Under the pieces are notes generated by a model. The model had not been told where the DNA came from. It saw only the letters and a program-made list of their open reading frames with translations, and did no database searches. Shown here in pieces: positions 18,191 to 64,000 of a stretch of DNA of 64,000 nt (positions are counted from its first letter, which is position 1; every line of letters starts with the position of its first letter). Made by a program: the position numbers and the translations under genes. The stretch is from Bugula neritina. Its lineage: Eukaryota > Animalia > Bryozoa. The stretch lies in NCBI GenBank assembly GCA_964035545.1, contig OZ037766.1:32478773-32542772 (forward strand). Reading direction: 5' to 3'.

Positions 18191-21100
18191 ATGGATGACT
18201 TGGTGGTGAGTGAGCCGTAACCTAAATATTGGTTGTGAATACCAACCAGCATAAATAGTATCCTTATAGTTTTTGGTTTTAATGTGTGGAAGTTTCAAAC
18301 ACTGAAGACTTGGCACAATAAACTAAATCAACATGTCTTGAAATTATTTGAGACTAAGTTAACTGACTATTACTGTACTGAAACTAGCCTTGTTATATTT
18401 TCAAAAAAGTTGACTAATCTGTTCACAGATAACTCCAGAAGAGCTGAAAGCGTTTAAAAAAGCTTACTGTGGTGCACATGGTGGGAAATACAACCTGGAG
18501 GTGTCTGTACCTTACCTAGAGAAGTTAGCCAATGGGTACCTGGAGAAATACAAAACATCTGATAATTGGACAGATATCCTCAAGGTACATTATTATGCAT
18601 TTATATTTCAGATATTTAAATGTGATCTTTTAGTCCTTGTTACGAAAACAATTAAAAAACATTCACAGTGTTTGTAATTTTAGGGGAGGGTGGGGGATGT
18701 GCACAGTTCTGGCCATATAATTCACGTCTTTGACGATTGATAAAGCTGTAGTCATATTGGCTAAACTAGCAGACAAATAGGATAGCTGTCTGCACTTCTT
18801 TAGCTCTTTGCAGAGCAGGTGGTTTGAATATGTCATCTTTTTATTTCTTGTAAATGATGCAAAAATCAGCAATCATGAATGAAAACAGCTACAGCTAGAT
18901 TCCTATAATAATCATAATTGTATTCATTTCTTACAATTTCTCACTTAACAAAGTTTAATTTCCAATGTCATGCATATTTTTCAAGTTTAATGCGTTTTTA
19001 GCCGCTAAACTAGTAGAATTAAAGTAACAATAAAAGTAACGTGAAGTGAGAATAAACAGCAGAAGAGCCAACATATAGGCTAAACTAGAGATGGCCATGT
19101 TTGCCTATATTGCGTTTTGGCAACTGGTAATGTCTATTTATTAGGTAGTTGTGTTCTCTTGTGAATGGGTTGCTATGGATAAAACTATGCACACATTATG
19201 CTATCAATAAAAACATAGTGTATGCTAAATAATAGCTGACATTATATTGAATATTATAGGAGATGAAATAAATTAAAATATATTAAATTTATATTACCTA
19301 CAGAGTAGTATAATGCTCTAAAGAGTAAGCAGGCTAGCGTTAGTATAACTATTGAAAGTTTCAGTGTATCTACAGAGAAGTACTCTTGCTATATGTAAAT
19401 TGTTAACTAATAACTTAAGTGCAAGCTAGAATGGTTCTATAGACAGCTCAGAGTTTGTGGTTCCAGAGTTTGGAGTTGGGGGTTTGTCTTGTCTACATAT
19501 ATAGCTTGCGCTCTGATATGTTTTAGGCACATGCTCTATGCAATTCTGTAGCTACCAGAAAGGCATCTGAAGTAGACTTGTGGAGAAAGAGGGCCTTTGA
19601 AGCACAATGTACTTATTGGAAGGATGATAGGGTTTGGAGTTATGAAGCACAATGTGCTATTATTTCAGAACTCTCCACCAATTTAGAAAGCATAAGAGAA
19701 CAAACTCGACTTAAAATTAAACAAGTTGACCAGCTTGTACAGATGCAGGATAAAAATCAGATTACAAAAGCAGAATTTATAAAAGCATTTGCAGAGCGAG
19801 TGGAGCATTGTTCACTTGACTGCACTGAAGAAATGGGGGCTTTTGCATGCAAGGTTTTTGAGTACAGCGTTGCTAGCTTGGCTGTCCAACCTCCATGCCA
19901 ATTCTGCGTAGTGGCAATAGGCTCTCTGGCTAAAGGAGAAGCAACACCTTATTCCGATATTGAGTATTTGTTTTTGATAGAAAAGGAGGGTCCCGGGGTA
20001 ATGCAGTATTTTGAAAAGTTAGCAATTTCTAGCTATTTTATAATTGGCAGCTTAGCGGAAACCCCTCTTGGATATCTATCAATTGCTGAACTAAGGGGCT
20101 GGTTTGAAGATACACAAATAAGTGGTTTTAAAATAGATGGTTTGAAAAATGGAGCAGGTAATATTCCAACAGGAAATGGCTCTACCACCAACAAAAATCA
20201 CTTTATTGTAACGCCAGAAAAGCTCATAGTAAGGTACAGGCACACACTAAATAACCCTGAAAGGGAGGCTCTCAGAGGTGATCTTACAGCTAAGTTGCAG
20301 TTTACAAAACTTGTTTATTCTCAAGGAGAAGAGGCTGAAGATTTGTTAAACAAGTTCTTGGAAGAGAAAGATTTAATGCAGGCAAATGACAAAAGGCAAG
20401 AATCAAACAGAGAAATGTTTGTTGAAGATGCCAAAAAATATGGGTTTCAACCAACAGAAGAGTTGATTAACAATGGCTTCTCTATTAACACAAAAAAGGA
20501 GCTGTATAGATATCCGTCTATTTTACTGTTCAATCTTGCAATAATATTCGCCTGTACGTATCAAAATTCTTGGAGAACTTTGGAGAAGCTTTCCCAGCAA
20601 AGGAAAATTTCAGATTCCGTGTATCAATCTGTTCAGTTTTTACTAGCATGCGCCTGTTACCTCCGGCTTTCAACATATCTGTTTTATAATTCAGCTGATG
20701 ATCGCCTGTCAGTTTTGCCAAAGCTCTTTTTTCAGTCTCAGGCACAAGAAGAGAACTCAGGAAAACGCTGGTTTCTTGTGCAAAGTTTGTTCAATCTCCA
20801 CTCTGACTTTTCCGTCCCTCTCAAAAAACACATTCGTTGTTGCCAATTTGAAGAAATCACTTCAGCACTAAAGAAAGAAATTCCAAAATCCAACTGGCTG
20901 GTAAAGTTTCAAACATACCATTGCTGCAATCGCTGGTCTAAAAGTCAAGATCATTTTGAAAAATATGTTAGCAAAAAATCACTTTTAACAAACCCTGAAC
21001 AGATTATCTATGAAATCCAGTGTGAGGTTTTAAGCAACTTTAGAGAGCTCTGGAATTCTGTCAAAGCTCTAACTTATTCATTGTGTCAAGAGAGAAAAGA

Positions 21101-22391
21101 GAAAGAAGCTCTTGAATATCATTTTGCAATCCAGCACATGATAGAGTCTGACAGATGTTCAGGAATCAGCTATAGAGAGCAGCAGCTGATTATGGCTGAC
21201 TCAAAAGCCGAGGCAGCGGACTGTTATTATGGTCTGCTGAATTACATCAAAGCACTTGAAGAATTTTGTTTTTCACTAGAAATTAGAAAACTGCATTTAG
21301 AACCTGATGATGAGCTGTTGGCTAAAACACATTTCTGCATTGGCAGAGTTTACAACATGATGTACAAATATCAAAAAGCACTTGCACATCTTTTCAAAGC
21401 CCTAGAAATTTGCCACATCCGGACATCAAAGGAAATAGAATACAATTATTACGGAGAGATAGTATACTCAGATGAAGACGTAGAACCATTGGTAGATCTC
21501 CTGAAAGAGAATCCAGAAGGCAGACTCAAGTATCTCAACAACCCTTCCATTATTCTTGCACATGTCTTGTGGACCATCGGACTCAACTACCTCTACACCA
21601 AGTACTATCAGTTTGCTTTCTTGTATTTTGAGAGAAGTAAAGAGATGCTGTACGAGAAATATGGAAGTGAGGCGTGTCACCGAGATATTTCCTACATCTT
21701 TTATGAACTTGCCAGTATAAGCACAATGCTAGGACGTCATGAAGATGCTGCCGTGTACTTCAACAAAGGCTTACTTATGCTGATACAATTATATGGACAG
21801 AAGAACAAGTTCAAAGCTGCTATATTAAAATATCTTGCTACAAGGAAACCTGCTTTTTATCACAGATTGATGGGCAACTTGCTGTTTAGTTTGCCTCGTT
21901 TTAAAGTTCCACATGCACAGTCTGCTGTTGTCGTTGCCCGATATGGTTTGCACCTTCTACATACTAGAGAACACAAGTTAGCGCAGATAGCTTTAAAACT
22001 AGCTCTTGAAATTTTTGAAAGAGCCGTGGCAGAAAATAAGGACTATTTGTACAAATATAAATCTAATGCAGTATCTTATCTAGCTCTCAATTACTGGAAA
22101 CAAGGGAAGTTTAAAAGCGCAGAAACATTATATCAAGAATCATTAGACCTTCTCTCAAAATGTAATAGAGCTTTGGATTTTCCTCAGTCTTTGGGCTTAG
22201 AGCAAGGAGAAATATTGCAAAATATTGGTATAATGTACCAATCATCCCGACAGTATGCAACAGCTCTCAGTTTATTTCGTGAGTCGAAACACTGCTTTAC
22301 GCGCAGCATTGATGATTCTAATCACCCAAAACTTTCTGAAGTTGAAGGTCAAATTGAAGCTGCAATATCATTGCTAGAATCTATACAATAA
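18191..22391 (+). CDS. Nucleotidyltransferase (GlnD/DUF294-like)-TPR protein, copy 1, ~1011 aa
   Basis: In-frame GT-AG exons 18191-18205 (MDDLV), 18429-18584 and 19527-22391; the same structure recurs in the paralogs. Pol-beta NTase motif VVAIGSLAKGEATPYSDIEYLFL, then GFKIDG, then a helical domain (KKELYRYP...LRLSTYL), then TPR-like repeats (e.g. LAKTHFCIGRVYNMMYKYQKALAHLFKALEI; ILQNIGIMYQSSRQYATALSLFRES). Confidence 0.9.
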
Positions 22392-23244: not shown

Positions 23245-23696
23245 ATTCTGCAGTATGGCTTGCATCTAGTTCATACCAGAAAGAACATTTGGCAAAGTTT
23301 TTTCTAAATAAAGCAGTAGAAATGTTTAAAAACACAGCATCAAAAAATAAAGAATACATAGATGGATATATTTCCAATGCTTTGGCCAAACTAGCATTAA
23401 ATCATTGGAAACAAGGAAATGTGAGCCATGCTAAACAGACCTATAGTGAATCGCTCTCTCTGCTGGCTGAGTTAGAGAAAGTTTCACCAGAAGTAGCGAC
23501 ACTAGAAAAAGGAGAAATATTACAATCTATGGGCAGCATGTATGACTCACTTTGGCAGCATGAGAAAGCTTTCATTCACTTTTAAAAGGCAAAAGAAAAT
23601 TTTCTGTTTGCTTGTGATGTATTAGATCATCCAAAAGTTTGTGAAACTGAGCTCCAAATTAAATCTGTTCAAAAAAAGCTAGACACTGAGCTAGTC
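23245..23696 (+). pseudogene. Orphan C-terminal TPR fragment of an NTase-TPR gene (copy-3/4 type)
   Basis: Matches copy 3 from ILQYGLHLVHT to LDTELV. In-frame TAA at 23583-23585 (CTA in copies 3/4); the normal stop is lost; no upstream NTase part. Confidence 0.85.
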
Positions 23697-25112: not shown

Positions 25113-26078
25113 GGAATCACTTGGTGATATCAACACTACATTGCTCACACTTGCATTTTTGCGTTGTGCCAATATTAGATTTAATTTCACAATAAAACAA
25201 TTATGATGTTAAAATCAGCTGAGTATATCAAATTTTTGAAACACTGCAGTACCTTATCCTTACTTCAAGAGTTTTCAATTTTGAAAGCTTTAGAATTATT
25301 CTTAGCCTATAATATTTTTTTTATTTTTATGTCATAGAAATGTTTCAAAACCTAATTCAACTCATTTTTTATTTAAATGATATAAGCTTTCAATTATCCT
25401 TCGGGCTTTGATTTTAAACAATGCAGATACCTAATTGTCATACCCATACATAGTGTTTCCCTATATTTTAACTACCAAATATAGTCAAGTTTCTGGAATT
25501 AAAGTCAGTAATTTACAATCCAATCATTTTTATATTATATAAACCTTTCTGCATGGGTAAACATTTAAAGAATTTTATTTTATTCAACGAAAATGTGCAG
25601 ATAGTTATTATGATGAACAAGTGATCAGGTTTAGCTTGCTTACAAATGATGACAGGGAGAAAAACTATCTATATAATTATTTATTAGAATGGTTTGCATA
25701 ATCATATGATTAATAACAATTTATCCTTGGGTGGTAATTGCAATGTACGATTAAAATAGGTTTCAAGGAGCTACGAAAAATTATCATGATATTTTAAAAA
25801 CATAAGCTAAGTTACGATTTATAGAATACTTCTATATATACAGTCTATTAAAAAAATGTGATAATTTCAAAGCATAATGGTTTCAGGTTTTAGCAGCAAA
25901 AATCTAATAAAAATTAGTTTTTTAAATTTAAAAAATACCAAATTATCAACATAAACTAATTAGAAGTAATTTGCCCCTGTCAAACATATAATTGCTTATG
26001 GCTTATAGCCGTAGACTTGGAGGTTTAAGAACACCAACTAACTCCTTTCTCTTGACAGAATTTTGATATATTTCCTGG

Positions 26079-26446
26079 TTATTTTCCCAGAAATTTGGAG
26101 CTTGTACTTAAATTCACAACGTACCTGTAACTGGACAAACACTTGCAGTTGTGTAGTTGGTTAGACTGAGCTCTTTCACACGGCTCTTTACACGAGTCCT
26201 TGTCAATACAGCATGCATGTTTGACAGAGACTTCTACTTCTGCTAAACAAAGAAGTTGGGCAGGGTCGACATCAAGCATGCTGACTTTGACAAATCGTCC
26301 AATCATAGAGCTGGTACATGTGAATACTTCTGGTCTATTCTCCCCAGCAGCAGGAGCACCATCTCTGTAGACACACAGTGAGTCATCATCATCTATAACT
26401 GACTCCAACTTGGCCACCGTTATCTTTATATTCTGCATCTGGTTTA
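26079..26446 (-). pseudogene. Isolated copy of the terminal exon of the lectin-repeat gene (domain half plus Cys-rich tail, frameshifted)
   Basis: Near-identical to 53842-54210, with an AG acceptor at 26447-26448. An insertion after SSYR shifts the frame and removes the final CxC. No upstream lectin exons are present. Confidence 0.8.
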
Positions 26447-26456
26447 CTAGGAAAAC

Positions 26457-27372: not shown

Positions 27373-28172
27373 TTAGTGTGTAAACATTGAGCTCTTTAGT
27401 GTGTAAACATTGAGCTCTTTAGTGTGCAAACATTGAGCTCTTTAGTGTGTCTGGTAGCAGAAGAACCTCAGCATGTTATATACCAGCTGCATTCATTGTT
27501 TGAAAACAAACTATATAACATAAACACTGGTTTCTGCTGTCTAAGTGTTGCAGCAAGACAAGCTACTCTAGTATAATGGTGACTCACTGTCTGCTATATA
27601 TATATTATTATTATAATATTTTAATTAGATATTTGGAACCGATCACAATCTACTATACTTTGACGACAGCAAGGGTCACTCTATCTGTGACAGCTGCGAT
27701 ATACTATTCCAGGCACTTGACACACTATAGTCACCTACATACTCACCTGTAATCTCTTAACCAATCATATTTGCTCTCTCAATCAATCAGCCAATGAACA
27801 ACAACCTCTGAGCTCTATATTAATTGTATTGTAAAACCTAATGGCAGCAGGAATTTGTCTTCTTTCTTTTTATTATAAACATTTTCACAGAACTCTGACA
27901 TGTTTACATAACTTAAATTCATCTGTTGATATTACATAAAACAGAACAAGGCTTTCTCCTGGCATTCTTATTCGCTAATAATTAAACTCCATCACAGTTA
28001 CACCAAAACAAGTTAAGCTTAGATTTACTTTGTAATTGATCTCTGGTCAGACTACAAGCTTGCTTATATGTAGTTGTGAAGAACCAAACCATGCTATATG
28101 TTGACGCAAAGTGTAGAATTATCTAGTAGATTGATGAACCTTATATAGCTTCTTGCTTCTCTGCAGCATTGG
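27373..28172 (+). promoter_or_regulatory. Putative promoter and first non-coding exon of NTase-TPR copy 2
   Basis: 23-bp VNTR x3, AP-1 TGACTCA 27580-27586, CCAAT 27761 and 27791, donor GTGAGT at ~28172. Conserved in inverted form at ~60340-61260 and in direct form at ~34365-35110. Confidence 0.5.
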
Positions 28173-29297
28173 TGAGTTTTAAATTCTAGTTTTTTCGAAA
28201 CAATTTTTTTGACTTCAAGTATGCAATTGACAGCAAATATTGTAATTCTGAACATGTATGTATAACTTATTTTTAGTTAAGCACCAGTATATGTACTGCA
28301 GTGGACTTTATGCACTAATCAATTGTAGAAAAAGTTGTGTTTTTTCAAATAAACATCAGATAAATTGACCGTTATCATTTGGTCAATTTATCTGATGCTT
28401 ATTTGAAATATTATATACACTTGATGGAAGCTGCTGAGTATATAGCACTTTAAATAACAGAGTAAATTTTAATATTTCCTATTTTGAAATTACTATTCAT
28501 TAAACACTACACAGTGATAAAAGTATATAGGAACTGGCCATAAACCCTACTAAAATGTATTAACCAATAAAATTTTCTAAAATCTTATAGAAGATGTTTT
28601 TAAAAGGCTTAAGATGGCATATATAGGCTACAGTCAAAATTGACAATAAAACTTTATCAAATTACAGTGAATTAACAACTTCATTCAACGTTTAAGCCAA
28701 CTCAGTGATAAAGCTTAACTGCTGAGCTGGCTTAAAAGCTAAAAAAATTAAACTTTTTGAATCCAGTTTCATGTGGGCCAGGCTGTATTTAGTAGCATTT
28801 ATAACTGTAGAGTGCAATGAAAGTCAGCAATAGTTAGCATTGGTACTGTGCATGTTTTAATAATGTTATCAGAATGAGTTCAGACAAAATATTTATATAT
28901 ATATAGAAAGAGAGCTTGTTTAAACTTTGGATGCTAAATATTCAACTAGATAAGATGGTTTGTCAATAGAATTTTTCATAGACAAACTACCAGTCAATTA
29001 GTTTACAAGTGTGATGTTTTAGTCTCTGATATTCTTTTTATGTCTGAAAAGATCATGTTAGATATATGTATATATCCTCAAATGAAATGACAAGTTTTGT
29101 TGGAAAGTTAATTATTATAGTTTGTGTATTTGTTTGGAGTTATACTAATTACTAATTATTCATGACTTTTACAAGAACTTCTGTGGATTACATATAATTG
29201 AACAATGCAGATACTTACATGTATACATACTCTTTCCATATTATAGACAATGATGGTAACTCCTATATACAACAACTTGTGAAATAACAGAAGTAAA

Positions 29298-47800: not shown

Positions 47801-50800
47801 CTTGCATTGAATATAGTACAATCATTAAGTTATAAAAAGAGGATTTTCTTAATGAGTTATATTTCAACAGTTGATATTCTTCTGCTATACAAATACAGTA
47901 GCTTGAAAAGTTTTTTGTAAATCAAATTAAAAGGCTATTTAAATATTAAATTATGATGCAACTAAAATATAGTTATAATATATAATTATGCTACAACTAT
48001 GATATAACTATAATATGATTATGTAACATAGCTATAATATAACTATAATATAATTATAATATAACTATAATACCATATAATATTGTAGACATACCAGACA
48101 GCTCAACTAGCTACATTAACTACGCTGTAACTAATTTATATGACAGAGATTATTCTACTGATTTCTGCACTAAAGATGACGTGAGTAAATTTCAATATTC
48201 TGTTTCTGGAAGTTACTTCTGTCCCAGAAATTTCACAAAATGTGGCATATTACAGCAAATTTTATATTAAATGTTTTTCTTTTGAAAAAATGCAGTCAAA
48301 TATTATTCAAGTATTTTTCAATAAATTAGTTCAGCAAACAAAAAAATCTGTTTGACTATGAGTGCCTAGCAAGGCCAAGTTAGAATTTACATGAAAAATG
48401 ATTTCAGTATTAAAATCCATTTAGAACTTGAAAAAATCAAACTCTTGGCAATTAAAAACACAATTTAATAATATACTGAGTAATATAGACATGCACTATA
48501 TCTCTTTTATTTGACTTTTTATCTAGAACTGTTAAAATCAAACTATATCCTTCATACAACTATATAGAACTATAACTGGAAATATAACTAGTATCTATGC
48601 TACTGGAGCTATAACATATTGTATTGGTAGGAATCTGGAAGATATGCACTGATAGACTTGGGGGACTTCTATAAAGTTGAAGAGCTTTGGCTGTGGGGTA
48701 GAGAAGGCACGTCCAGTTTCTACTGTAAGTCCTGCTAAAACTCAGTCTAAAATACTAAAATAGTTTTATCTATTTAAAAAAAATTTTTTTAACCACATGG
48801 CACCATGGTTCTAAATTTTGAAAATATATTTTAGTTAGAGTTGTTTCATTCACATATTAGTTGAAGTAATAACAAATTGATATAATGAAACTTGCACTAA
48901 AACTCTTCTATTAAATTAAAAAACATCCTGTCATTTTAAACTGCTTATTATAGATCTATTTTTATCTATTCTGAATATAATTATTTTCCATTAATAAAGC
49001 TACAAGACTTTATACTACATTTATTCAACAGTAAATCAGATGCAGAATATGAAGATAACGGTGGCCATGACAGAGTCAGCTATAGATGATGATGACTCAC
49101 TGTGTGTCTACAGAGATGGTGCTCCTGCTGCCGGGGAGAATAGACCAGAAGTATTCACATGTACCAGCTCTATGATTGGACGATATGTCAAAGTCAGCAT
49201 GGTTGATGTCCAATCAGGACAGTTTTTCTGTTTGGTAGAAGTAGAAGTGTTTGGGTACAACTATGAGGGTGAGTTGTGTTTCAGAATAGTCTGAGTTCTT
49301 TGACTAAACATAACATAAGTTCCTGACTTCTGTGTTTTAACTGCGAGTTTAATAGCTTGCTGCTAAACTATAGACATGCTTAAAGCACAATCATTTGCCT
49401 TATATTCAGCACTTTCACTTTTGCTCTGTCATTATAGACAAATAACTTCAATGAGTTCTTTATTAACAAGTTGTGTGGCAGTCTCAGTTTGAAGTTAGGC
49501 TAGTTGTATTTGTCATTGTAAAGATCTATTGTGAAATGCAACCGTGCAGCTGAAATCTTGAATGTTTATATTTATTATATTTCAGGTCCTGCCGAGATTG
49601 CTATATCTGGTGAGTAAGATAACAATTTATTACGTGCTGTGTTGCGCATTATAAATATTTTAAATATAGAGTATAATAGTCTAATGATAAAACTGCTAAA
49701 TGTTTTGCATTTGAAAAAAAAAATTACAAATGAATCTAAAATTCAAGACTTGCAACTTAAAAATCTGATAATTAAGTTGATATAACTGCTGTTGGAAAAA
49801 GAGCTATTCTCATCGATAATAGTTCAATTTGTTGAAGATCATTATAATAGCTGTTGTTATGCATGCAATGTATATTCCGTAGCAAATGACAATTATTTTT
49901 ATAATATGTTGCTATAATAATTTTCACCCTAAATATATCATAATTAAGGTATCAAACTATAGTAGTTCCAGTAATACATATTACCAAAATTACTTAACAG
50001 AAAAAACGTAGTATATATTCTTATTCAGCAGTTAATGTAATATAATTATAATTATAATTATATACCTATACTATATATCTTATATATATAACTACAATAT
50101 ATGTACATATACTATAATTATAATTTAACTATACTATATAAATATATAATACAAATATTATATAACTATAATATAATAATAATATAACTATAATATAACT
50201 ATAAGATAACCATATTATAACTAAATACTATGCATGTTGTAGACATACCAGATAGCTCAACTAGCTACAGTAGCTACGCTGTAACTAATTTATATGACAG
50301 AGATTATTCCACTGACTTCTGCACTAAAGATGACGTGAGTAAATTTCAATATTCTGTTTCTGGAAGTCATTTCTGTTTCAAAGATTTTACAAAATATGGT
50401 GTGTTATAGATTATATTATAAATTTTTTTGGAAATGAAAAATAAAATGACTTCGTTTAAGCATATCTTTTTAATTGTTTTACTAGAAAAGCTCTTTACAT
50501 ATATAGCGATTTCTGTAATGCTGATGCTATAACCACAAAAAATCTTTCTAAGAATTAGAAGTTTTGAATTTTTATTGCTCAGTAAAATTCTAAGAAGTAC
50601 ATCTGTAATAGTAAAATATTTTTGGTTTATATATTAATTACCTAATTTATCTTTGCTGATAATAATAATAACCCCATTATTCTTGTGTAGCCATAAGCAT
50701 CTGGTAGGTAAAATATACAAGTGCTGTTAATGCCACCATTGTTCTCATCTAAAACCGTTAAAATCAAACTCTTTCCTTCATTCTACTGGAACTATAGCAT

Positions 50801-53800
50801 ACTGTATTCATACTACAACTAAAACTATAATATATGTATTGTTATAGTTATATAAATTTATAACATAATATTGTATTGTTAGGAATCTGGAAGATATGCA
50901 CTGATAGACTTGGGGGACTTCTATAAAGTTGAAGAACTTTGGCTGTGGGGTAGAGAAAGCACCTCCAGTTTCTACTGTAAGTCCTGCTAACACTCATGGT
51001 TTATGTATTTTTAAAAATATGAAAGATTTGAATTAAATTTGCAAAAAAAACCTAAACACTCTGTATCGCATGAAAAACTGATTTTACTTTCAGTATGTTA
51101 AACATTTTAAAACTAAACTAGTGATTTTATATCTAAAAGTTTAAATTACTTCAATTATGGGAATATAATTATTTTCTTAGTAAATCAGACGCAGAATATG
51201 AAGATAACAGTGGCCACGACAGAGTCAGCTATAGATGATGATGACTCACTGTGTGTCTACAGAGATGGTGCTCCTGCTGCCGGGGAGAATAGACCAGAAG
51301 TATTCACATGTACCAGCTCTATGATTGGACGATATGTCAAAGTCAGCATGGTTGATGTCCAATCAGGAGAGTTCTTTTGTTTGACAGAAGTAGAAGTGTT
51401 TGGATATGGAGCTGAAGGTAGCAGTTTAGTATAAGCAGAGTATAATATACTGCTTTGCTACTTACTCCTCACTGAACATTACATCAGCATAGCTGCTTGA
51501 ATAAGTTGACTGCACTCTTCCACATTTAGTTTTCAGAAGATGTATTAGCAAATTACACAAGTATTAGTTTTGTGGTTTACTTACTAAACATATATTGTGA
51601 AGAGTTTTTATTCAAATAAAAAAGTTTCATAATTTGCAATAACTATGTCCATATATGTTATCATTTGTCAATCACTATTATATTATGTTGAGCTCTTCTA
51701 ACTCTGCTATTGTATGTTTCAGAGATAAGTAGAGCTGCAGTGACGGGTAAGTGCTGCCAGTAACATGTGAAATGAATAGCCCTGTTTTTCTGCTGCCAGT
51801 AACATGTAAAATGAAAAGCCCTGTTTTCTTATATATTTCATAGTTTAACAGCTTTTCGTAAATTATAAGTAATAACTATGATATATTCTTTAATTGGTGA
51901 GCAATAAAATGGTATTCTAGCAGGATTTGTAAACTCAAATAAAACAAATAATTGGACTAACTGCAGGTAAAGAGTTTAACATTAACCAGCATGTATAGCT
52001 AAACTGTGAATTCAATCTGTGCGTGCAATGTATTGCGAGATATGCAGATATACCTCAGTTTGTGGAGGTATTTGGCTTTTTAAGCTACTAACAAACTTGC
52101 TCTGTTTGCTAACTACTTTTGTGCTGTAATTTAAAACTTTTGACTTTGCTCTAATATGTATAACACAGCTGAAACAAGCTTCAAACTAGATAGCTTGAGA
52201 GCAAAAATACTTTTTCTGTATAAATGACAGCAAAGTAAAATACGCAGTATTTAGCTGTCTATATATATATTATACTTTGGTGCGTTTCTAACATTGCATA
52301 TAATTAGCCTTTTACACTTCATATAAAACTGATGGTATGTGTAATATAATATACTGTGTCATTTTGTCTATGTAAAAGTGCCAATATTTATAACACACTG
52401 TAGATATATCTGGCTCAGAAGAACTCAGTAACTTTACAATTTCCAACTTGATTGATGGAGATTACACCAGCACCTTCTGCACTGCAGCTGTGAGTGTTTA
52501 CCAGGCTGCCAGTGTTTATTGATTCATAAAAAAGTGTCTAAGTTTTATCTTCAAAAAATTCATGTAAACAAGCTCATTGGCTACAAGTTTACTATAGCAA
52601 ACAACTATCTGGCTCTAGGAATTGCCAATCTGGTTATTTTGCTAATAAAATTTTAGTTTTGAGTTAGAAGTCACTCTGACTGAGTTGAACCTCAAATTTT
52701 ATTTTATATGAATAGCAACACATACACAAGTTGTTTTTATAGCAATTTTAGGCTTATATATTGTTGTTATAGTAAAATAAATAATTATATATAAATATTC
52801 AGAGTATAATTGATATATAATTGCATACATTGACATTCAATGAAACTAATTGGTGTAACAATTTTAATTCTGAACTGCCTCTTCTATTGATTCAAAAATT
52901 AAACTGCTTTTAAATATTCATTGCGTAAAGTTAGTTTACTCAAAGCACTATTCTGATTTTGCAAGAAAGTTACAACTTTAGTCCAGACTACTTTTTGAAG
53001 CTTTCTTTTCCTGTACATATATTGAAATTCATGAAGCATAAACTATATGTATATATGATGATATAAATATATAGCTTTAATTGTGGCTGATTACAGGAGT
53101 CAGGTAAATATGCGGTGATGGATCTGAAGAATGTGTATGAAATTGCAGAGCTGAGAATATGGGGAAGAAACTACAAATCCAGCATCCATTGTAAGTAAAA
53201 TTTTATAAATAGATAAGTTTCTTTCTAAAAGGTAACATTAATGTGTAATATAAGTTAAAGTCTTAACAAATAGCAAATTATGTGAAAGAAAATAATATTA
53301 AAAAAATATTAAAAAGTATTGCTTTAAACTAGTTATTAAAATTAATAAAAAAGAAATTATCAAACAAAAACCGAGTATATGTTATAATTTTTCTTGCATA
53401 AATCTTCTAAAAGAATTCTATTTTAACTTCTTATAAACCCTCTATATAAACCTTTTATAGACCTTCTATATTTATAAACCTTCTATAATAAACTTCTTTA
53501 AGCCTTTTATAAATTTTTTATATATCTTGTATCAGTTTACATAAAATGTTTTACACAGCTTTTTCAATCTATTATAAGCAAACTAAAAGGTCGTATTTGC
53601 TAACAGATGACATACTGTTTAGCAGTTTTTTGCTGCTTGCTTTTATTTCCCTTACTGCATTTTGCTGCAAGTTTCTTACAGTTTTATAACGCTTCAGGAT
53701 GTTAGAAAAAATTTTGAATCTCATTCTTACAAAGTTCAATAGATGAATTTATTTAAAAGTAATTTATTTTAATTTTATAGGTAAACAATACTTATATAGC

Positions 53801-54245
53801 GCTAATGTAAATACGATATTTAAACTTACTTTATTCAACAGTAAATCAGATGCAGAATATGAAGATAACGGTGGCCACGACAGAGTCAGCTATAGATGAT
53901 GATGACTCACTGTGTGTCTACAGAGATGGTGCTCCTGCTGCCGGGGAGAATAGACCAGAAGTATTCACATGTACCAGCTCTATGATTGGACGATATGTCA
54001 AAGTCAGCATGGTTGATGTCGACCCTGCCCAACTTCTTTGCTTAGCAGAAGTAGAAGCCTATGTCATGCATGTGGGCTGTATTGACAAGGACTCGTGTAA
54101 AGAGCCGTGTGAAAGAGCTCAGTCTAACAAACTTCACAACTACAAGTGTTTGTCCAGTTACAGGTGTGAATGCAAGTACAAGTTCCAAGTTTTTGGGAAA
54201 ATAACCAGGAAATATACCAAAACTTTGTCAAGAGAAAAGAGTTAA
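38824..54245 (+). CDS. Probably secreted protein with five tandem F-type-lectin/F5-8 type C-like domains and a C-terminal six-Cys (CSab-like) module; ~800 aa; start exon not located
   Basis: Phase-consistent exons: 38824-38844 (xLLAAAWG, possible signal-peptide end). D1 39385-39408, 39964-40049, 43985-44078, 44576-44815. D2 45372-45395, 45709-45797, 46183-46276, 47055-47291. D3 47508-47531, 48089-48180, 48631-48724, 49032-49268. D4 49586-49609, 50243-50334, 50883-50976, 51181-51417. D5 51723-51746, 52404-52489, 53097-53190, 53842-54245. Domain motifs NLxDGD, FCT, IDLG..Y.V..LWLWGR, FTC...MIGRYVKV, C..EVEV. Confidence 0.85.
39275..39360. repeat. 27-bp tandem repeat x3 (ATGAATATGGTGACGTGTTCCTCATGA)
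   Basis: Direct; just upstream of the first microexon acceptor. Confidence 0.9.
40315..40620. repeat. Degenerate ~22-24-bp intronic minisatellite (TGTTCAATGGTGAGCTTATATA-like)
   Basis: Direct tandem units. Confidence 0.85.
45845..46150. repeat. 11-bp minisatellite (CTATAACATTG/CTATAACAGCG)
   Basis: Fills most of the D2 intron between exons 45709-45797 and 46183-46276. Confidence 0.93.
47581..47736. repeat. Two abutting AT-rich palindromes (64 bp with one mismatch; 96 bp perfect)
   Basis: 47581-47644 is centred on CTATAG; 47641-47736 (TTATTTACTGAAG...CTTCAGTAAATAA) has no spacer. Confidence 0.93.
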
Positions 54246-55699
54246 TTGGTGTACTTGAATCGTCAGGTCTAAGATTATAAACTATAAACAATGATGTGTT
54301 TGACAAGGACAAATTACTTTTAATTAGTTTACGTTGATGTCGTGATATATTCTTAAAATTTAAAAAGCTACTTTTTAACAAATTTTTCCCACTAAATCTG
54401 ACACTAATATGCGTTGAAACTCTCACATTTTTTGTTTTAATAAATTGTAAAGCATTCTATAAATTATAATTTAGCTTGTGCTTTTAAAAAATCATTTTTT
54501 TTGTAGCTCCATGAAACATATTCTAATAAATTGTATTACACACAAACATAAATTGCCATCAATTATAATTATACAAACCTTAATATACTAAGAATAAATA
54601 AAATTTCTTCCTGCGTCACCATCTGCAAGTTAGTTAAACCCAAGCACCTTTTTATTATTAGCTGCACATTGTAGATAAAATAAAAGTTCAATTTACAGTT
54701 TTACGTAGAAAGGCTTATATAGCAATAATTAAAATATTCAAATTTATCATCTCAACTATTAGATAGTGAGGATGACTTTATATCTAGTCAATTATGGTTT
54801 TTACATATATGGGCTCTACACAATGTGTGACATTGATATGAACTTCAACCGAATTCTCCATTAAATGTATGCTGTTTTAAGTTTATTGTTTAGTTTCTTA
54901 AAACAGCACCATTCCTGAGCTGCAGTAGCAGTGTGTAATGCAATAATATGTGATAAGAAGGAGATTGACTTGTAGTGAACTGCATTGTATGTTTACTACT
55001 AGCTAACAGTTCATATAAGCAGATATAGAAATATGTGTATAAATATAAAAATATAACACAAAAATAGTGATACTGATTATAGTAGGAGACGAGATCTACT
55101 AGTTATTGTTGATCAGTTGATCAGCAGTGCAATCTTTTAGCTATTAGTTAAAGTAGTTTTCTGTTTGTTTGAGTTGGAGTTGTGTTCTACTGCTACATGG
55201 CTTCAGCTGATCCATCTATAGTGCTGGTTTTTCCAGTCATTGTTTAAGCTAACTATAAAAGTAATTATTTAAAGTAGTTATCTACACTGTAAGATAAGAA
55301 ACTATAAGGGATTTTAATTTGCTTCCAATTTTATAATTTTCTAAACCAATGCAGAAATTAGGAGAAAACCTCTCCTCAAAGTTTAGATGTATAGAATATG
55401 ATGAAAAGATGAAAACATGTTTGATGCCTGTTTGAACAATTTTATTATCATTATTAACTGTATAAAATGTATTATGTAACATTATGCTGACAAAAGTCAG
55501 CCAGTATAATTAGTCATAATCAACATTGCCTACTTTTAAATACAAAAATATGTGTTGATGAAAACAGACTATATATTATTAGTGAATATAAAGTATAAAG
55601 CTAGTCATGGTTTATCATGTAACAAGAAAATATAATTTTAGTTTAAAGTGTCACTCACAGAACGTAGCAGAAAGTGAAAGCTACAACGTAGCAGCAGAC

Positions 55700-58600
55700 T
55701 TAGACTAGCTCAGTGTCTAGCTTTCTTTGCACAGATTTAATTTGGTGCTCAGTTTCACAAATTTTTGGATGATCTAATACATCGCAAGCAAACACAAAAC
55801 TTTCTTTTGCCTTTAGAAAGTGAATGAAAGCTTTCTCATGCTGCTGAAGTGAGACATACATGCTGCCCATAGATTGCAAAATTTCTCCTCTTTCTAGTGC
55901 TGCTGGTTTTGGTGAGATTCTGTCAAACTGAGCCAGCAGAGAGAGCGATTCGCTATAGGTCTGTTCAGCAAGACTCACATTTCCTTGCTTCCAATGACTT
56001 AATGCTAGTTTGGCCAAAGCATTGGAAATATATCCATCTAAGTATTCTTTATTTTCTGACGCTGCAATTTTAAACATCTCTATTGCTTTATTCAGGTAAA
56101 ATTTTGCCAAATCATTCTTTCCAGTATGAACTAAATGCAAGCCATACTGCAGAATCGCAACTGCTGATTGTGCATGTGGAACTTGGTAGCGGGATAAACA
56201 GAGGAAAACTCTGACTAAGATGTTACGATATGTTGGAGAGTTTCTTGTGACAAAGTAGTGTAAGACAGCAGCTTTGAACTTACTCTTTTGTGCATACAAT
56301 TGAGCAGTCATAGTTAGGCATCGCTTAATGTACTCCTCGGTATCTTCATGTCGTCCTAGCATTGTACATGCGCTGCCTAATGCATACATTATGTGAGCAA
56401 TGTCTCGGTGACACGCCTCACTTCCGTACCTCTCATAGAACATCTCCTTACTTCTCTCAAAATACAAGAAAGCAAACTGATAGTACTTGGTGTAGAAATA
56501 GTTGAGTCCGATGGTCCACAAGACATGAGCAAGAATAATGGAAGGGTTGTTGAGATACTTGAGTCTGCCTTCTGGATTCTCTTTCAGGAGATCTACCAAT
56601 GGTTCTACGTCTTCATCTGAGTATATTATCTCTCCGTAATAATTGTATTCAATCTCTCTTGATGCCAGAAGATGACAAATTTCTAGGGCTTTGAAAAGGT
56701 GATCCCGAGCTTCAACATACTGATACAGCATGTTGTAAACTCGTCCAACGCAAAATTCTGTTTTTGCTAGCAACTCATGATTGCTTTTCAAATGCCTTTT
56801 ACGGATTTCTAGCGAAGATTTGTATTCCTCCACTGCTTTTGTGTAATTGATCAAACCATAATAACAATCTGCAGCTTCAGCCTTTGAATCAGCCATAATA
56901 AGCTGTTGCTCCTTGAAGTTTTCTGAGCCATGGCCATCCTCAATCATTCTTTGTATTGCAAAATGATATTCCAGAGCTTCTTTGTATTTCCTTTCTTCAC
57001 ACATAGAATAGGTTAGTGCTTTTACAGAATTCCAAACTTCAGAAAAGCCTCCTTGGACTGTTTTTTGAATTTCGTGAATAACTCCTTCAGGGTTTGTGAG
57101 CAGACTCTTATTTTCGATATGCTTTTCAAAATAATCATTGCCTTTAGACCAGCGATTGCAGCAGTGAAAAACTTGGAATTTTATCAACCAGTTTGGATTT
57201 TCAATTTCTTTTTTAACCATTTGCTCAATATCATCAACTGTGCAGCTGCCAACATGCTTCTTTAATGGAACTGAATAGTCACAATGAAGGTTGAACAATG
57301 TCTGAGACAAAAACCATCTTTGTCCTGAACTCACTTCTCCTTTGATTGCTGGTTGAGTAATTTGAGAAGGGAAATAGTTTTTAGGTAAGACTGATAACTT
57401 GTTGTCAGCTGAGTTGTAGAGCAAGTAAGTTGAAAGACGCAAATAGCATGCACATGAAAGTAGAAACTGCAGAGATTTGTGCACAGAGTTGGAAATGAGT
57501 TGCTGTTGAAAAAAAATATTCAATGTTGTCCACGAGTCCAAAGATGAGGAGCCAAATATAATAGAGAGGTTGTACAGAAGAATGGAGGGGTATCGGTATA
57601 ATTCCTTTTTGGTGTTGATAGAAAAGCCATTGTTTATCAACTCCTCGGTAGGCTGGAAACCAAACTTTTTTGCATCAGAAATAAACATGTTTCTGTTGGC
57701 TCTATGCCTGTTGACATTTTTAGGTTGCAACTTGTTCTTTCTTTCAACAAACTGTTTAAACAGCTCCTTGGAATCTTTTCCATGACTGTATACCAGTTTG
57801 GTATACTGCAGTTTTGCCGTGAGGTCTCCCTTAATTGAATATTCTTCTTTTGGATCATTCAAGACTTGTTCATAGCTTTCTAGAAGCTGTGAAGGAGTAG
57901 CGATAAAATGGTTTTTCTGCACATCAGTACCATTTCCTGTGGGTATACTTCCAGCGTCTTTCTTCAATCCATCAATTTTAAAACCACTCATTTGGGCATC
58001 TTCAAACCATCTTTTTAGCTCCAACACTGATAAATACCCCAGTGAGGTTTCTGCCAGGTTGCCTATTATAAAATAGCTTGACAAAGCCAATTTCTCAAAG
58101 TAGGTGATGTTATCTGGTGTTGCTGTTTCAATTAAGAAAAGGTACTCAATATCTGAGTACGGAGTAGCTTCACCTTTAGCTAAGGAACCGAGCGCCACCA
58201 CACAGAAACTACAGGGAGGCTGAGAAATCAGGCTTTCAACACTGTATTCAAAGACGGTTTTTGCAAATCCAACCATTTGCTCTGTGCATGCCAGTGAAAT
58301 CTTTTCAATATCAGTGACAAATGTGTCAATGAATTCAAAGTTTGTTATCGTTTGTTTGTCAAGTTTAATTACAAGCTTGTCTACCTGAGCAACTTGACAT
58401 TTTACCTTCTCCCTAATGCATGAAAGAGTGTTTGCTAACTTGCATGTCACGTCTTTTTGTACGTCATAGCTCCAGCTTCTATCCTCTTTCCAATATAAAC
58501 TTTGAGCCTCGAAAGCCTGCTGTTTCCAGAATTCCACATTTTTTTTGCTCACTCTCACAGAAACGGAGTTATAAAGAGCATGTGCCTGAAACATACAGCA

Positions 58601-59221
58601 GGCACTATTTTTATTATGATGCAATTCTCAATATGGTTTTCTTGTATCTATATATTATTTTACTGAATTAAAAGCTACAGCTAAGTTGTTAAATTAAATT
58701 ATTTTGTAAACTATCATATGTGAAAAGCTTCATAATAAGAGATATGTCCACCGCAGAAAATTCAATAAGAACTGTGTGCATATACAGCAATAACAACTGT
58801 GCCCTAAGAGAAATGAGAAGAGTTGGTAATATTTGAATGTAACCCTAAACAAAGCTTCTTTACCTTGAGGATATCTGTCCAATCGCCAATTGCATTGTAT
58901 TTCTCCAGGTAGCCATTGGCTAATTTCTCTAGGTAAAGTTTAGACACTTCCAGGTTGTATTTCCCACCATGTGCACCACAGTAAGCTTCTTTAAATGCTC
59001 TCAGCTCTTCTGGGAGCATCTACACACGTATTGTTATTTTACTATTATATTATACACGTACTATGTTATATTGTTGCATGCATATGCAATAATATTGCAT
59101 GTATTGTATGTGGTAGTATAACACGCTATATATATACTGTATATAGATACTATAATGTGGTACTCTAATACATACGGCCTTTCAAATCTACCAACTTACT
59201 CACCACAAACTCATCATCCAT
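55700..59221 (-). CDS. NTase (GlnD/DUF294-like)-TPR protein, copy 3, ~1019 aa
   Basis: Exons 59221-59204 (MDDEFV), 59019-58864, 58585-55700. The listed ORF start at 58624 is intronic (acceptor TTTCAG at 58586-58591). Same motifs as copies 1 and 2. Confidence 0.9.
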
Positions 59222-60339
59222 TTTACTTTCTGTTATTTCACAAGTTGTTGTATATAGGAGTTACCATCATTGTCTATAACATGGAAAGAGTATGTATACA
59301 TGTAAGGGTATGCATTGTTCAATTATATGTAATCCACAGAAGTTCTTGTAAAAGTCCTGAATAATTAGTAATTAGTATAACCTCAAACAAATACACAAAC
59401 TATAGTAATTAGTCTTCCAAAAAAACTTGTCATTTCATTTACTGATACATTTTTACCATCATCTTTTCAGACATAAAAAGAATATCAGAGACTAAAACAT
59501 CACACTTGTCAACTAACTGACTGTTAGTTTGTCTATGAAAAATTCTATTGACAAACCATCTTATCTAGTTGAATATTTAGCATCCAAAGTTTAAACAAGC
59601 TCTCCTTCTATATATATAAATATTTTGTCTGAATTTATTCTGATAACAGTATATTAAAGCATGCACAGTACCAATGCTAACTATTGCTGACTTTCATTGC
59701 ACTCTACAGTTATAGATGCTATTATAAATACAGCCTAGCCCTTGATCAAACTGGCTTTAAAAGTTTCAACTTTTTAGCTTTCAAGCCAGCTCAGCAGTTA
59801 AGCTTTATCACTGAGTTGGCTTAAACGTTGAATGAAGTTGTTAATTCGCAATAATTTGATAAGCTTTTATTGTCAATTTTGACTGTAGCCTATATATGCC
59901 ATCTTATAAGCCTTTTAAAAACATCTTCTATATAAGATTTTAGAAAATTTTGTTGGTTAATACATTTTAGTAGGGTTTATGGCCAGTTCCTATATACTTT
60001 TATCACTGTGTAGTGTTTAATGAATAGTAATTTCAAAATAGGAAATATTAAAATTTACTCTTTTATTTAAAGTGCTATATACTTAGCAGCTTTCATCAAG
60101 TGTATATATTCTTTCAAATAAACATCGTATAAATTGACCAAATGATAACGGTCAATTTAATTCATTGCTGATTTGAAAAAACACAACTTTTTTACAATTG
60201 ATTAGTGCATAAAGTCCACTGCAGTACCGGTGCTTAACTAAAAATATGTTATACATACATGTTCAGAATTACAATATTTGCTGTCAATTGCATAGTTGAA
60301 GTCAAAATATTGTTTTGAGAAAACTAGAATTTAAAACTC

Positions 60340-61260
60340 ACCAATGCTGCAGAGAAGAAGCTGTATAAGTTTCATCAATCTACTAGATAATTCTACACTT
60401 TGAGTCAACATAGCATAGTTTGGTTCTTCACAACTACATATAAGCAAGCTTGTAGTCTGACCAGAGATCAATTACAAAGTAAATCTGAGCTTGTTTTGAG
60501 GTAACTGTTTGTGATGGAGTTTTATTAGCCAATAAGAAAGTCAGAAGAAAGAATGCCAGGAGATAAGGCCTGGTCCTATAAAATGTAATATCAACAGATG
60601 AGTTTAAGTTATGTAAACATGTCAGAGTTCTGTGAAAATGTTTATAATAAAAAGGTAGAAGACAAATTCCTGCTGCCATTAGGTTTTACAATACAATTAA
60701 TACAGAGCTCAGAGGCCATTCTTCATTGGCTGATTGATTGAGAGAGCAAATATGATTGGTTAAGAGATTACAGGTGAATATGTAGGTGACTATAGTGTGT
60801 CAAGTGCCTGGAATAGTATATCGCAGCTGTCACAAATAGAGTGATCCTTGCTGTCTTCAAAGTATAGTCGATTGTGATCAGTGCCAAATGTTTAATCAAA
60901 ACATTACATTAATAATATATAGCAGACAGTGAGTCACCATTATACTAGAGTAGCTTGTCTTACTGCAACACTTAGACAGCAGAAACCAGTGTTTATGTTA
61001 TATAGTTTGTTGTCAAACAATGAATACAGCTGGTATGTAATATGCTGAGGTTCTTCTGCTACCAGACACACTAAAGAGCTCAATGTTTACACACTAGAGA
61101 GCTCAATGTTTACACACTAGAGAGCTCAATGTTTACACACTAGAGAGCTCAATGTTTACACACTAAAGAGCTCAATGTTTACAGGCTAAAGAGCTCAATG
61201 TTTACACACTAGAGAGCTCAATGTTTACACACTAAAGAGCTCAATGTTTACACACTAAAA
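60340..61260 (-). promoter_or_regulatory. Putative promoter and first non-coding exon of copy 3, with 23-bp VNTR x8 (61067-61258)
   Basis: Reverse complement of 27373-28172; TGAGTCA 60930-60936; ATTGG boxes; eight CAATGTTTAC units. Confidence 0.55.
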
Positions 61261-62003: not shown

Positions 62004-62137
62004 GAAATTAGATGCGGAATATAGAGATAACGGTGGCCACGTTGGAGTCAGCTTTAGATGATAATGACTGCAAGTTCCAAATTTTTTGGAAAATAACCAG
62101 GAAATATACCAAAATTCTGTCAAGAAAAAAGAGTTAG
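62004..62137 (+). pseudogene. Internally deleted remnant of the lectin gene's terminal exon
   Basis: The exon start (GATAACGGTGGCCACGTTGGAGTCAGC) is joined at ~62068 directly to CAAGTTCCAAATTTTTTGGAAAATAACCAGG from the exon's 3' end; the downstream sequence matches 54245 onward. Confidence 0.75.
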
Positions 62138-63559
62138 TTGGTGTACTTAAATCGTCGGGTCTAAGATTATAAACTATAAACAATGATGTGTTTGACAAGG
62201 ACAAATTATTTTTAATTAGTTTACGTTGATGTCATGATATATTCTTAAAATTTAAAAAGCTGTTTTTTAACAAATTTTTCCCACTAAATCTGACACTGTT
62301 ATGCATTGAAACTGTCACATTTTTTGTTTTAATAGACTGTAAAGCATTCTATAAATTATAATTTAGCTTATGTTTTTAAAAAATCATATTTTTTGTAGCT
62401 CCATGAAACTTATTCTATTATATTGTATTACGTACACAAACATGAAGTGCTATCAATTATAATTATACATACAAACCTTAATTTACTAAAAGTAGATAAA
62501 ATTCTTTCCTGCCACCATCTGTAAGTTAGTTAAACTCAAGCATGATTTCATTATATTAGCTGCATATTCTCAAATTCAATAAAATAAAAGTTCAATTTGC
62601 AGTTTTACGTAGAAAAGCTTATACAGCAATAATTGGAATATTCAAATTCATTATCTCAACTATTTATAGATAGTGCGGATAAATTTATATCCAGTCAATT
62701 ATAGTTTTTACATATATGGGCTCTACACAATTGTGACATTGATATGAACTTCAACCAAAATTTCCATTAAATGTATGCTGTTTTAAGTTTATTTTGTGGT
62801 GCAACAATATGCGAAAAGAAGGAGGTTGATTTGCAGTGAACTGCATTGTATGTTTACTACTAACAGTTCATAGCAGATATAAAAGTATGTGTATAAATAT
62901 AAAACTATAACACAAAAATAGTGATATTGATTATAGTAGGAGATGAGATCTATTAGTCATTGTATATAACGATGTTTCTAACTCAGTTGATCAGTGCATC
63001 TTTTAGCAATTATATAGCTAAAGTATTGTCCTGTTTGTTTGAGTTGGAGTTGCGTTCTACTGCTACATGGTTTCAGCTAATCCATCTATAGTGCTCGTTT
63101 TTTTCAGTCATTGTTTAAGCTATAAACTATACTAAGTAGTTATTTAAAGTAGTTATCTACATTGTAAGATAAGAGGCAGAAGTGCAGAAATTATAGAAAG
63201 AAATCTCTCCTCAAAGTTTTTTAGTGCATAATTCACCAGGGCTTCACAACATAGAATAGAAACAATAACCTACAGAGGTATAAAATATAATAAGAGGATG
63301 AAAACCTGTTTGATAACTGTTTGAAAATTTTTACTATTATCATAAGCTGTATAAAATGTATTATGTAACAATACGCTGACAAAAGTCAGCCAGTAGGTCA
63401 CACTTGTAAATAATCAACATTAGTTTTAAATAAAAGACTATGTGCTGATGAAAACAGACTATATTACTGAATAAATATAAAACTAGTCATGGTTTATCAT
63501 GTTATAAGAAAATCGAATTTTAGTTTAAAGTGTCACTCGCGAGACATATAGCAGTAGAC

Positions 63560-64000
63560 TTAGACTAGATCAGTGTCTAGCTTTCTTTGCACAGTTTTAA
63601 TTTGGTGCTCAGTTTCACAGATTATTGGATGATCTAATACTTCACATGCAAACACAAAACTTTCTTTTGCCTTTAGAAAGTGAATGAAAGCATTCTCATG
63701 CTGCTGAAGCGAGTCATACATGCTGCCCATAGATTGCAAAATTTCTCCTCTTTCTAGTGCTGCTGGTTTTGGTGAGATTCTGTCAACTCGAGCCAGCAGA
63801 GAGAGCGATTCACTATAGGCCTGTTCAGCAAGATTCACATTTCCTTGCTTCCAATGACTTAATGCTAGTTTGGCCAAAGCATTGGAAATATATCCATCTA
63901 TGTATTCTTTATTTTCTGATGCAGCAGTTTTAAACATCTCTATTGCTTTATTCAGGTAAAATTTTCCCAAATCATTCTTTCCAGTATGGACTAGATGCAA
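63560..64000 (-). CDS. 3' end of NTase-TPR copy 4 (partial, runs off the window)
   Basis: Open frame closely matching the last 146 aa of copy 3, with the same stop position. Whether the gene is complete cannot be seen. Confidence 0.7.
   Translation of the reverse strand: MHLVHTGKNDLGKFYLNKAIEMFKTAASENKEYIDGYISNALAKLALSHWKQGNVNLAEQAYSESLSLLARVDRISPKPAALERGEILQSMGSMYDSLQQHENAFIHFLKAKESFVFACEVLDHPIICETEHQIKTVQRKLDTDLV

Follow-up and report, generated by a model that had tools for sequence, protein, structure and literature searches.

A cluster of TPR-fused GlnE/DrrA/DUF294-type nucleotidyltransferase genes, candidate protein AMPylases, in the bryozoan Bugula neritina

We analysed a 64-kb stretch of the Bugula neritina genome (hereafter the window; G000:C2:32478773-32542772), situated on a chromosome-scale contig of 33.6 Mb in an assembly of 216 Mb, which carries a cluster of genes each joining an N-terminal nucleotidyltransferase (NTase) module to about 450 amino acids of tetratricopeptide repeat (TPR) helices. 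A tblastn search of the window with the 954-amino-acid open reading frame (ORF) of gene 2 as query, together with a six-frame ORF listing, revealed three genes of three exons each, all intact, together with the 3' end of another gene and a disrupted C-terminal relic (Table 1). The full-length intact copies found by tblastn (19572-22358 and 29962-32823 on the plus strand, 55703-58558 on the minus strand) correspond to uninterrupted ORFs of 937 codons (19578-22391, +), 954 codons (29962-32826, +) and 974 codons (55700-58624, -). A preliminary description of this DNA, made from its letters alone, had counted four paralogs plus a fragment, and this count was exact: three full copies, one copy at the edge and the relic. 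Its starting point, 18191, is the ATG of the short first exon of gene 1, and the GSLAKGEATPYSDIE motif and the GFKIDG strand that it had singled out are found in all three full copies. The tandem and inverted duplication that it described is real (Table 1), and self-comparison of the window also gave a direct repeat (54179-56140 versus 62071-64000). Gene 1, whose protein is 62% identical to that of gene 2, is an older copy.

Table 1. Positions of the NTase-TPR genes and associated features in the window (position 1 is the first nucleotide of the 64-kb stretch)
Feature	Position	Strand	Remarks
Gene 1, exon 1	18191-18205	+	15 nt; ATG; MDDLV; donor GTGAGT
Gene 1, exon 2	18429-18584	+	52 amino acids; AG...GT; matches the N-terminus of Watersipora gene model P0006
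Gene 1, exon 3	19527-22391	+	TTTTAG acceptor; begins AHALCNS...; NTase module and TPR array; intact
Relic of a further NTase-TPR copy	23251-23696	+	last ~140 codons; frame change and internal stop
Gene 2, exon 1	29298-29315	+	ATG; MDDEFV; donor GTGAGT
Gene 2, exon 2	29507-29662	+	52 amino acids
Gene 2, exon 3	29935-32826	+	modelled protein is 29962-32823
Gene 2, catalytic motif	30331-30375	+	G124-S-x10-D136-I-E138 (GSLAKGEATPYSDIE); aligns residue for residue with DrrA G98-x11-D110-x-D112
Gene 2, GFKIDG strand	30535-30591	+	third acidic residue D196, then invariant G-N-I-P-T-G-N-G loop
Gene 2, TPR array	31597-32823	+	residues ~546-954; 8 helix pairs and a cap helix; one insert, 636-660
Gene 3, exon 3	55700-58585	-	TTTCAG acceptor; intact; 85% identical to gene 2
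Gene 3, exon 2	58864-59019	-	AG/GT borders
Gene 3, exon 1	59204-59221	-	ATG; MDDEFV; donor GTGAGT
Gene 4, 3' end	63563-64000	-	last 146 codons; complete and intact past the window edge (L003, G000:C2:32542338-32545193)
Inverted duplication, 5.4 kb	27374-32812; other arm 55714-61142		89.7% identity; self-comparison
Array of neighbouring modules	43883-54245	+	at least five repeated two-exon modules; ends ...FxCLxEVEVFGY; separate from the NTase-TPR genes

Each gene consists of three exons, with all junctions in phase 0 and canonical AG/GT borders in all three copies. The long ORFs are the third exon and not whole genes. Each follows a conserved acceptor, TTT(T/C)AG and then GCACATGCT, with the ORF proper starting at AHAL(C/Y)NS. 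Exon 2 comprises 156 nucleotides encoding 52 residues (ITPEELKAFK...NWTDILK) and lies about 1 kb upstream in gene 1 and about 0.3 kb upstream in genes 2 and 3, while the first exon of 15-18 nucleotides (ATG GAT GA..., with the donor GTGAGT) is found about 220 nucleotides upstream of exon 2. In the NCBI (RefSeq) gene model P0006 of Watersipora subatra the exon-2 peptide is fused to SHALWNSVS..., which provides independent support for the predicted splice pattern; this model excepted, the peptide was absent from the 244 homologous proteins checked. The searches and structure models described below used exon 3 or exon 2 singly, so that the N-terminal ~66 residues of the mature product lie outside the models.

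Exon 2 of gene 1 and exon 2 of gene 2 (29507-29662; likewise 58864-59019) show 93% nucleotide and 90% protein identity, and the high-identity alignment ends exactly at the splice sites; for the main exons of the same two genes the values are about 70% and about 62%, with saturated synonymous divergence (dS). This excess conservation points either to gene conversion limited to exon 2 or to constraint on the nucleotide sequence itself.

All window copies carry the signature of the Pol-beta superfamily, namely an hG[GS]-x9-13-[DE]h[DE]h motif followed by a later third acidic residue. Across 36-50 homologues, G124, S125, E130, T132, P133, S135, D136, E138 and D196 (gene 2 numbering) are invariant or nearly so, as are the G-N-I-P-T-G-N-G loop, D295, K317, R322, R374 and Y378; the set G124-x11-D136-x-E138, D196, K317, R322 and R374 is kept in every window copy and in every paralogue checked. 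The closest Pfam family is DUF294 (PF03445), with scores of 24.4 bits for gene 1, 22.3 for gene 3 and 18.5-19.9 for gene 2 at a gathering cut-off of 21. In an alignment of 50 N-terminal modules, 46 matched DUF294 (at E<=0.01), 32 matched SidM_N and 27 NTP_transf_2, with PF03710 matched by a single homologue. Relatives from amphioxus scored 40-80 bits with DUF294 (1e-10 to 1e-22) and 35-49 bits with the helical DUF294_C family (PF10335; 1e-8 to 1e-13), for which Pfam gave no sequence match in the window copies. When the family profile was compared with the PDB, the Legionella protein DrrA (SidM) ranked first (E 2.7e-5), with GSLAKgeATpYSDLE aligned to GSLAKaqATeYSDLD.

The window copies are nonetheless neither DrrA nor GlnD: their SidM_N score is 14.4 bits against a cut-off of 27, Pfam found no Rab guanine nucleotide exchange factor (GEF) or P4M domain in them, and the NCBIfam equivalog models for GlnD gave 16-18 bits against cut-offs of at least 519, with no HD or ACT match. 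Neither the window copies nor the 50-homologue alignment matched the Mab21, OAS or CD-NTase Pfam families, and the PADLOC models of defence NTases did not match the window NTases. By Pfam, no NTPase domain is present in any copy or long paralogue, which sets the family apart from NLR/STAND receptors with their central NACHT or NB-ARC domain, and no F-box or OTU domain was matched in the window proteins. No signal peptide or transmembrane segment was matched in the NTase-TPR protein.

The structure models agree with these profile matches. An AlphaFold2 model of residues 1-440 of gene 2 reached a predicted local distance difference test (pLDDT) score of 90 and a predicted template modelling score (pTM) of 0.91, and a Foldseek search with it returned, below E 1e-3, only DrrA and both domains of GlnE (E 2e-7 to 1e-6). 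Alignment with VIA-align gave a Z of 25.3 for DrrA (6yx5_B; 315 of 339 residues aligned), 21.6 for the N-terminal and 21.1 for the C-terminal domain of GlnE; aminoglycoside NTases followed at 7.6, HalB at about 6 and the CD-NTases DncV, CdnB and CdnE at 3.7-4.2. The predicted module, an NTase core followed by a helical domain, is thus superposable on the solved structures of GlnE and DrrA. In the ESM Atlas, it matched a mainly chordate DUF294+TPR cluster (template modelling (TM) score 0.84) and, over residues 35-440, several bacterial DUF294+DUF294_C clusters whose proteins also carry CBS, Cache or PAS sensors (TM 0.65).

The C-terminal half is covered over residues ~546-954 by matches to TPR_12, TPR_10 and TPR_1, with TPR_12 at E 1e-15 to 1e-18 in the window copies. 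In a model of the full-length exon 3 of gene 2 (pLDDT 89.4, pTM 0.89), a plain helical linker (441-545) leads into eight helix pairs and a cap helix (548-953), interrupted at 636-660 by a loop and a small hairpin; the high pTM implies a defined packing of the NTase and TPR halves. The preliminary description had assigned the proteins to Pol-beta NTases of the GlnD/GlnE/DUF294 type as opposed to Mab21/cGAS or OAS, with a helical partner domain and a TPR-like C-terminal half, and had suggested Pfam with AlphaFold and Foldseek as a check. These methods bore the assignment out: a DUF294-type NTase plus TPR, a helical domain resembling that of the DUF294+DUF294_C clusters, and acidic residues aligned with those of DrrA.

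The genes of the window belong to a large family. At least about 60 loci were found in this genome, pseudogenes included. The local cluster comprises six genes, five of them intact (L012, genes 1-3 and L003) and one with stops (L004/L016). Exon 2 is common to a clade of 16 paralogues; a larger clade, with the motif GSVARGTATPYSDLE, has ORFs of 861-2267 codons that join the NTase to TPR arrays of widely varied length, up to 22 TPR units. The B. neritina protein EB796_018089 matches the genome at 97%, and a second B. neritina protein stands on a near-zero branch beside a local paralogue in the tree. An ORF of 463 codons (L049:5475-6863, minus strand; G000:C2 ~24502660-24503790) encodes an NTase with no TPR. 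Its GSLARGEATPYSDIE motif is intact, and it alone among the local copies exceeds the SidM_N cut-off, with 28.0 bits.

When 1.84 billion representatives were searched exhaustively with the family profile, 2304 proteins matched at E<=1e-3, 657 of them at E<=1e-30. The named animal members come from Branchiostoma belcheri, B. floridae, B. lanceolatum, Owenia fusiformis, Watersipora and Bugula; the bacterial members include TPR proteins of 3000-3700 amino acids from Candidatus Jidaibacter acanthamoeba (P0203, P0207 and P0236), one of them named as an F-box protein, and unnamed metagenome matches lie on gene-poor, eukaryote-like contigs. A scan of bacterial genomes gave one real relative (26% identity, in an uncultured metagenome-assembled genome), the remaining matches being limited to the motif. 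Neochlamydia possesses the NEX2 family of 50 members with an F-box/OTU-DUF294-TPR architecture (Domman et al. 2014, PMC4209131). The occurrence of DUF294+TPR proteins in amphioxus and environmental chlamydiae, which the preliminary description had mentioned, is therefore confirmed; the family is expanded by lineage and, as that description had noted, includes pseudogenes.

In a quick maximum-likelihood tree of NTase domains, the bryozoan domains are monophyletic (support 100) and those of amphioxus and Owenia each form their own clade, with an unresolved backbone and several long branches. The separate animal clades point to independent expansions; the direction of gene transfer cannot be read from the tree, nor can a donor be named. 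Part of the bryozoan clade A is older than the split between Bugula and Watersipora and is conserved. The Owenia relative P0210 (OTU, two DUF294 and TPR) has the architecture of NEX2 members (F-box-OTU-DUF294-TPR), a likeness that hints at a possible exchange of genes between eukaryotes and the endosymbionts of amoebae. Three Branchiostoma models (P0097, P0105 and P0124) contain two to three NTase modules per protein, three identical ones in P0105; they might result from merged tandem genes or from assembly errors and not be genuine multi-enzyme proteins.

Selection was estimated from nine close paralogue pairs as pairwise dN/dS (NG86), a crude measure and not a site model, for each domain, for each class of TPR helix and along windows of 30 codons. 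For recent paralogues the overall dN/dS lay between 0.13 and 0.33, and that of individual domains in individual pairs between 0.06 and 0.64. On pooling, the NTase module came to 0.20 and the A and B helices of the TPR to 0.24 and 0.22, respectively; the TPR showed no excess compared with the linker, the helical domain or the NTase core. No 30-codon window exceeded 0.5 in these nine pairs. All parts of the protein are thus functional and constrained, and the divergent sensor ends that the preliminary description had taken to fit immune-type evolution are not seen in this cluster by this crude measure. Over longer distances the TPR diverges faster, with about 30% identity against about 50% for the NTase. 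Among the sequencing runs listed as containing the locus there was no RNA run; the single one that contains it is a public DNA run, whose short contigs extend to intergenic DNA as well. At two places within the ORF of gene 2 (30340-30636 and 31549-31769), its contigs and the assembly disagree at 3-5% of positions; these differences reflect high heterozygosity or cross-mapping of close paralogues, and could bear on allelic diversity.

Between the NTase-TPR genes lie repeated two-exon modules that were duplicated together with them (Table 1), with further copies at 25536-26448 (minus strand) and 62071-62589. The second exon reads ...DDDDSLCVYRDGAPAAGENRPEVFTC...GRYVKVSM...FCLxEVEVFGY, and the last copy of the array (53850-54245) has a Cys-rich tail. 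The preliminary description had noted a lectin neighbour. The repeated modules exist, and a protein-language-model (protein-atlas) match to discoidin/F5_F8_C offers a weak lead, but four Pfam scans gave no match for their exons and the lectin identity is unconfirmed. Elsewhere in the window, ORFs of 120-145 codons at 3786-4223, 7023-7486 and 12043-12456 were rejected as spurious products of long micro- and minisatellite tracts. The satellite tracts include (TG/CA)n with a 24-nucleotide period and repeats of the HLSHHVT type.

The genes are real, spliced animal genes with cytosolic products. With moderate confidence, we interpret these products as TPR-directed nucleoside monophosphate (NMP) transferases, in which a module of the GlnE/DrrA/DUF294 type is coupled to a TPR solenoid, and which are probably protein AMPylases. 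The G-x11-[DE]-x-[DE] motif defines the AMPylases of the glutamine synthetase adenylyltransferase (GS-ATase)/DrrA class, and enzymes with this fold and motif attach AMP or UMP to a tyrosine of their target, for example Tyr397 of glutamine synthetase, Tyr51 of PII and Tyr77 of Rab1 (PMC8097203, PMC12409994). By analogy, the Pol-beta core would act together with the helical, KNTase_C/DUF294_C-like domain, which would supply basic residues for the nucleoside triphosphate (NTP), and an NMP, presumably AMP, would be moved from the NTP to a hydroxyl of a target protein. We infer the activity, the nucleotide and the protein acceptor from fold, catalytic-type residues and relatives of known function. 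The TPR array might pick or present the target and possibly restrain the enzyme, and each paralogue may have its own target or ligand. Enzyme-fused TPRs, such as those of FICD, OGT and PP5, select substrates or autoinhibit. In FICD, the TPR is described as selecting the substrate BiP (PMC8065156).

Several observations weigh against this interpretation. Single window copies score at or only slightly around the DUF294 cut-off, gene 2 falling below it (24.4, 22.3 and 18.5 against 21 bits). Since bacterial DUF294 enzymes have no established function, a small molecule or a nucleic acid might also serve as acceptor; SidL (PMC13431035) was considered as a precedent for metabolite adenylylation and dropped, as it has the unrelated MCF1-SHE fold. 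In addition, the fold leaves the direction of the reaction unfixed, because the N-terminal domain of GlnE, which shares it, removes AMP.

A possible but distinctly tentative account is that the proteins are innate immune sensor-enzymes, in which a microbial or danger ligand sensed by the TPR activates the NTase, which then NMPylates host or pathogen proteins as a defensive response, the whole forming an NLR-like repertoire that lacks the NTPase switch. Much of the family's behaviour suits this account: about 60 loci in tandem clusters with pseudogenes, proteins of 861-2267 amino acids with TPR arrays of varied length, patchy phyletic spread with independent lineage-specific expansions, and a TPR that outpaces the NTase in long-range divergence (about 30% against about 50% identity). 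The bacterial versions of the NTase module are habitually fused to sensors (CBS, Cache, PAS), and its relatives in the endosymbionts of amoebae make up expanded families that resemble effectors (P0203, P0207). However, no diversifying selection is seen in the cluster, where dN/dS is about 0.2 in all domains, equal for TPR A and B helices and above 0.5 in no window; the PADLOC defence NTases did not match, the lectin neighbour is unconfirmed, and part of clade A predates the split of Bugula and Watersipora and has been conserved. A regulatory family would account equally well for the purifying selection and for the age of clade A. The number and clustering of the copies, the pseudogenes, the patchy spread and the parallel with endosymbiont effectors are in keeping with a possible role in conflict or defence, and it is from such family dynamics that we infer what the preliminary description called a defence system.

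The same module could instead remove NMP groups by phosphorolysis, or work in both directions, as an enzyme similar to the N-terminal domain of GlnE that acts on the targets of other AMPylases or of pathogens. The deadenylylating N-terminal domain of GlnE (1v4a) fits the model as well as the adenylylating C-terminal domain (Z 21.6 versus 21.1), and reversibility of GS-ATase has been described (PMC12409994). DrrA, the nearest match in both sequence and structure, is however a forward AMPylase; nothing in the sequence separates the two directions. We regard a deAMPylase as unlikely.

Less probable still is a synthase of nucleotide second messengers or oligonucleotides similar to cGAS, CD-NTases or OAS, with the TPR binding an activator; it is the less likely of the two chemistries, protein NMPylation and nucleotide signalling, that the preliminary description had put forward. 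The Pol-beta catalytic triad is common to both, and a weak structural likeness extends to Hailong HalB and the CD-NTases. Their Z values (3.7-4.2 for CD-NTases including DncV and CdnE, about 6 for HalB) are nevertheless far from the 21-25 of GlnE and DrrA, the Mab21, OAS and CD-NTase Pfam families did not match, and no receptor partner is evident. Finally, that the genes are not animal genes at all, being bacterial or symbiont contamination or recent untranscribed relics of horizontal transfer, is suggested by the bacterial origin of their nearest characterised relatives and by related architectures in intracellular bacteria, but is effectively refuted by their intron structure (three exons with GT-AG introns, exon 2 being common to the Watersipora RefSeq model) and chromosomal context (a 33.6-Mb chromosome-scale contig of AT-rich animal DNA with microsatellites), and is opposed as well by the monophyly of the bryozoan domains (100% support) and by purifying selection.

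Taken as TPR-directed NMP transferases, the bryozoan proteins can be placed beside several known systems. The N-terminal domain of DrrA/SidM (PDB 6yx5, 3nku) is the best match in both profile and structure and has both the NTase core and the helical domain in common with them; at about 15% identity, it is part of a secreted effector with Rab GEF and phosphatidylinositol 4-phosphate (PI4P)-binding domains, whereas the bryozoan protein is encoded by the animal host and has a TPR array in their place. E. coli GlnE (PDB 1v4a, 3k7d) is alike in its bipartite fold and catalytic motif, and matches to GlnD models are weak and at the level of the motif; GlnE has two NTase modules and the bryozoan protein only one, with no regulatory parts of the PII or ACT type. 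Bacterial DUF294+DUF294_C proteins (PF03445/PF10335, with CBS, cNMP, Cache and PAS fusions) follow the same logic of a sensor or binding domain joined to an NTase, but their sensors are N-terminal and bind small molecules, in contrast to the C-terminal TPR of the bryozoan proteins, which have in addition a long N-terminal three-helix region (residues 5-108). The NEX2 proteins of Neochlamydia and the giant TPR proteins of Candidatus Jidaibacter share the DUF294+TPR core and a massive lineage-specific expansion; they are encoded by amoeba endosymbionts as presumed effectors, and the F-box and OTU domains of NEX2 are not present in the window proteins. Metazoan FICD/HYPE offers a functional analogy as an animal AMPylase with TPR-based substrate selection (PMC12409994, PMC8065156). 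It has the unrelated Fic fold and is single-copy, anchored in the endoplasmic reticulum and conserved across animals, whereas the bryozoan family is multi-copy and patchy, with no transmembrane match.

Bacteria are already known to have both the enzyme fold and the DUF294+TPR architecture; new are the expanded, animal-encoded version and the proposed likeness to DrrA. Our literature searches found no published description of the animal family. In databases, which flag the domain automatically, its members carry no label other than uncharacterised or 'Protein-PII uridylyltransferase N-terminal domain-containing'. Reviews recognise only two classes of animal AMPylase, Fic (FICD) and SelO (PMC8097203). 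The GS-ATase/DrrA class, treated as bacterial, is here encoded by the host, intact and constrained, in about 60 TPR-fused genes of one bryozoan. It is conceivable, though doubtful at present, that this class forms a third, hitherto unrecognised group of metazoan AMPylases, radiated into a large TPR-addressed repertoire in bryozoans, amphioxus and some annelids that would tag pathogen or self proteins in defence or colony-level conflict and would have its ancestry in common with endosymbiont effectors. The architecture held in common with these effectors offers a clue to a possible passage of genes between intracellular bacteria and eukaryotes. Should the enzymes prove active, the family would provide ready pairs of enzyme and address for substrate finding, and some phyla would have a much greater diversity of AMPylation than has been assumed for animals.

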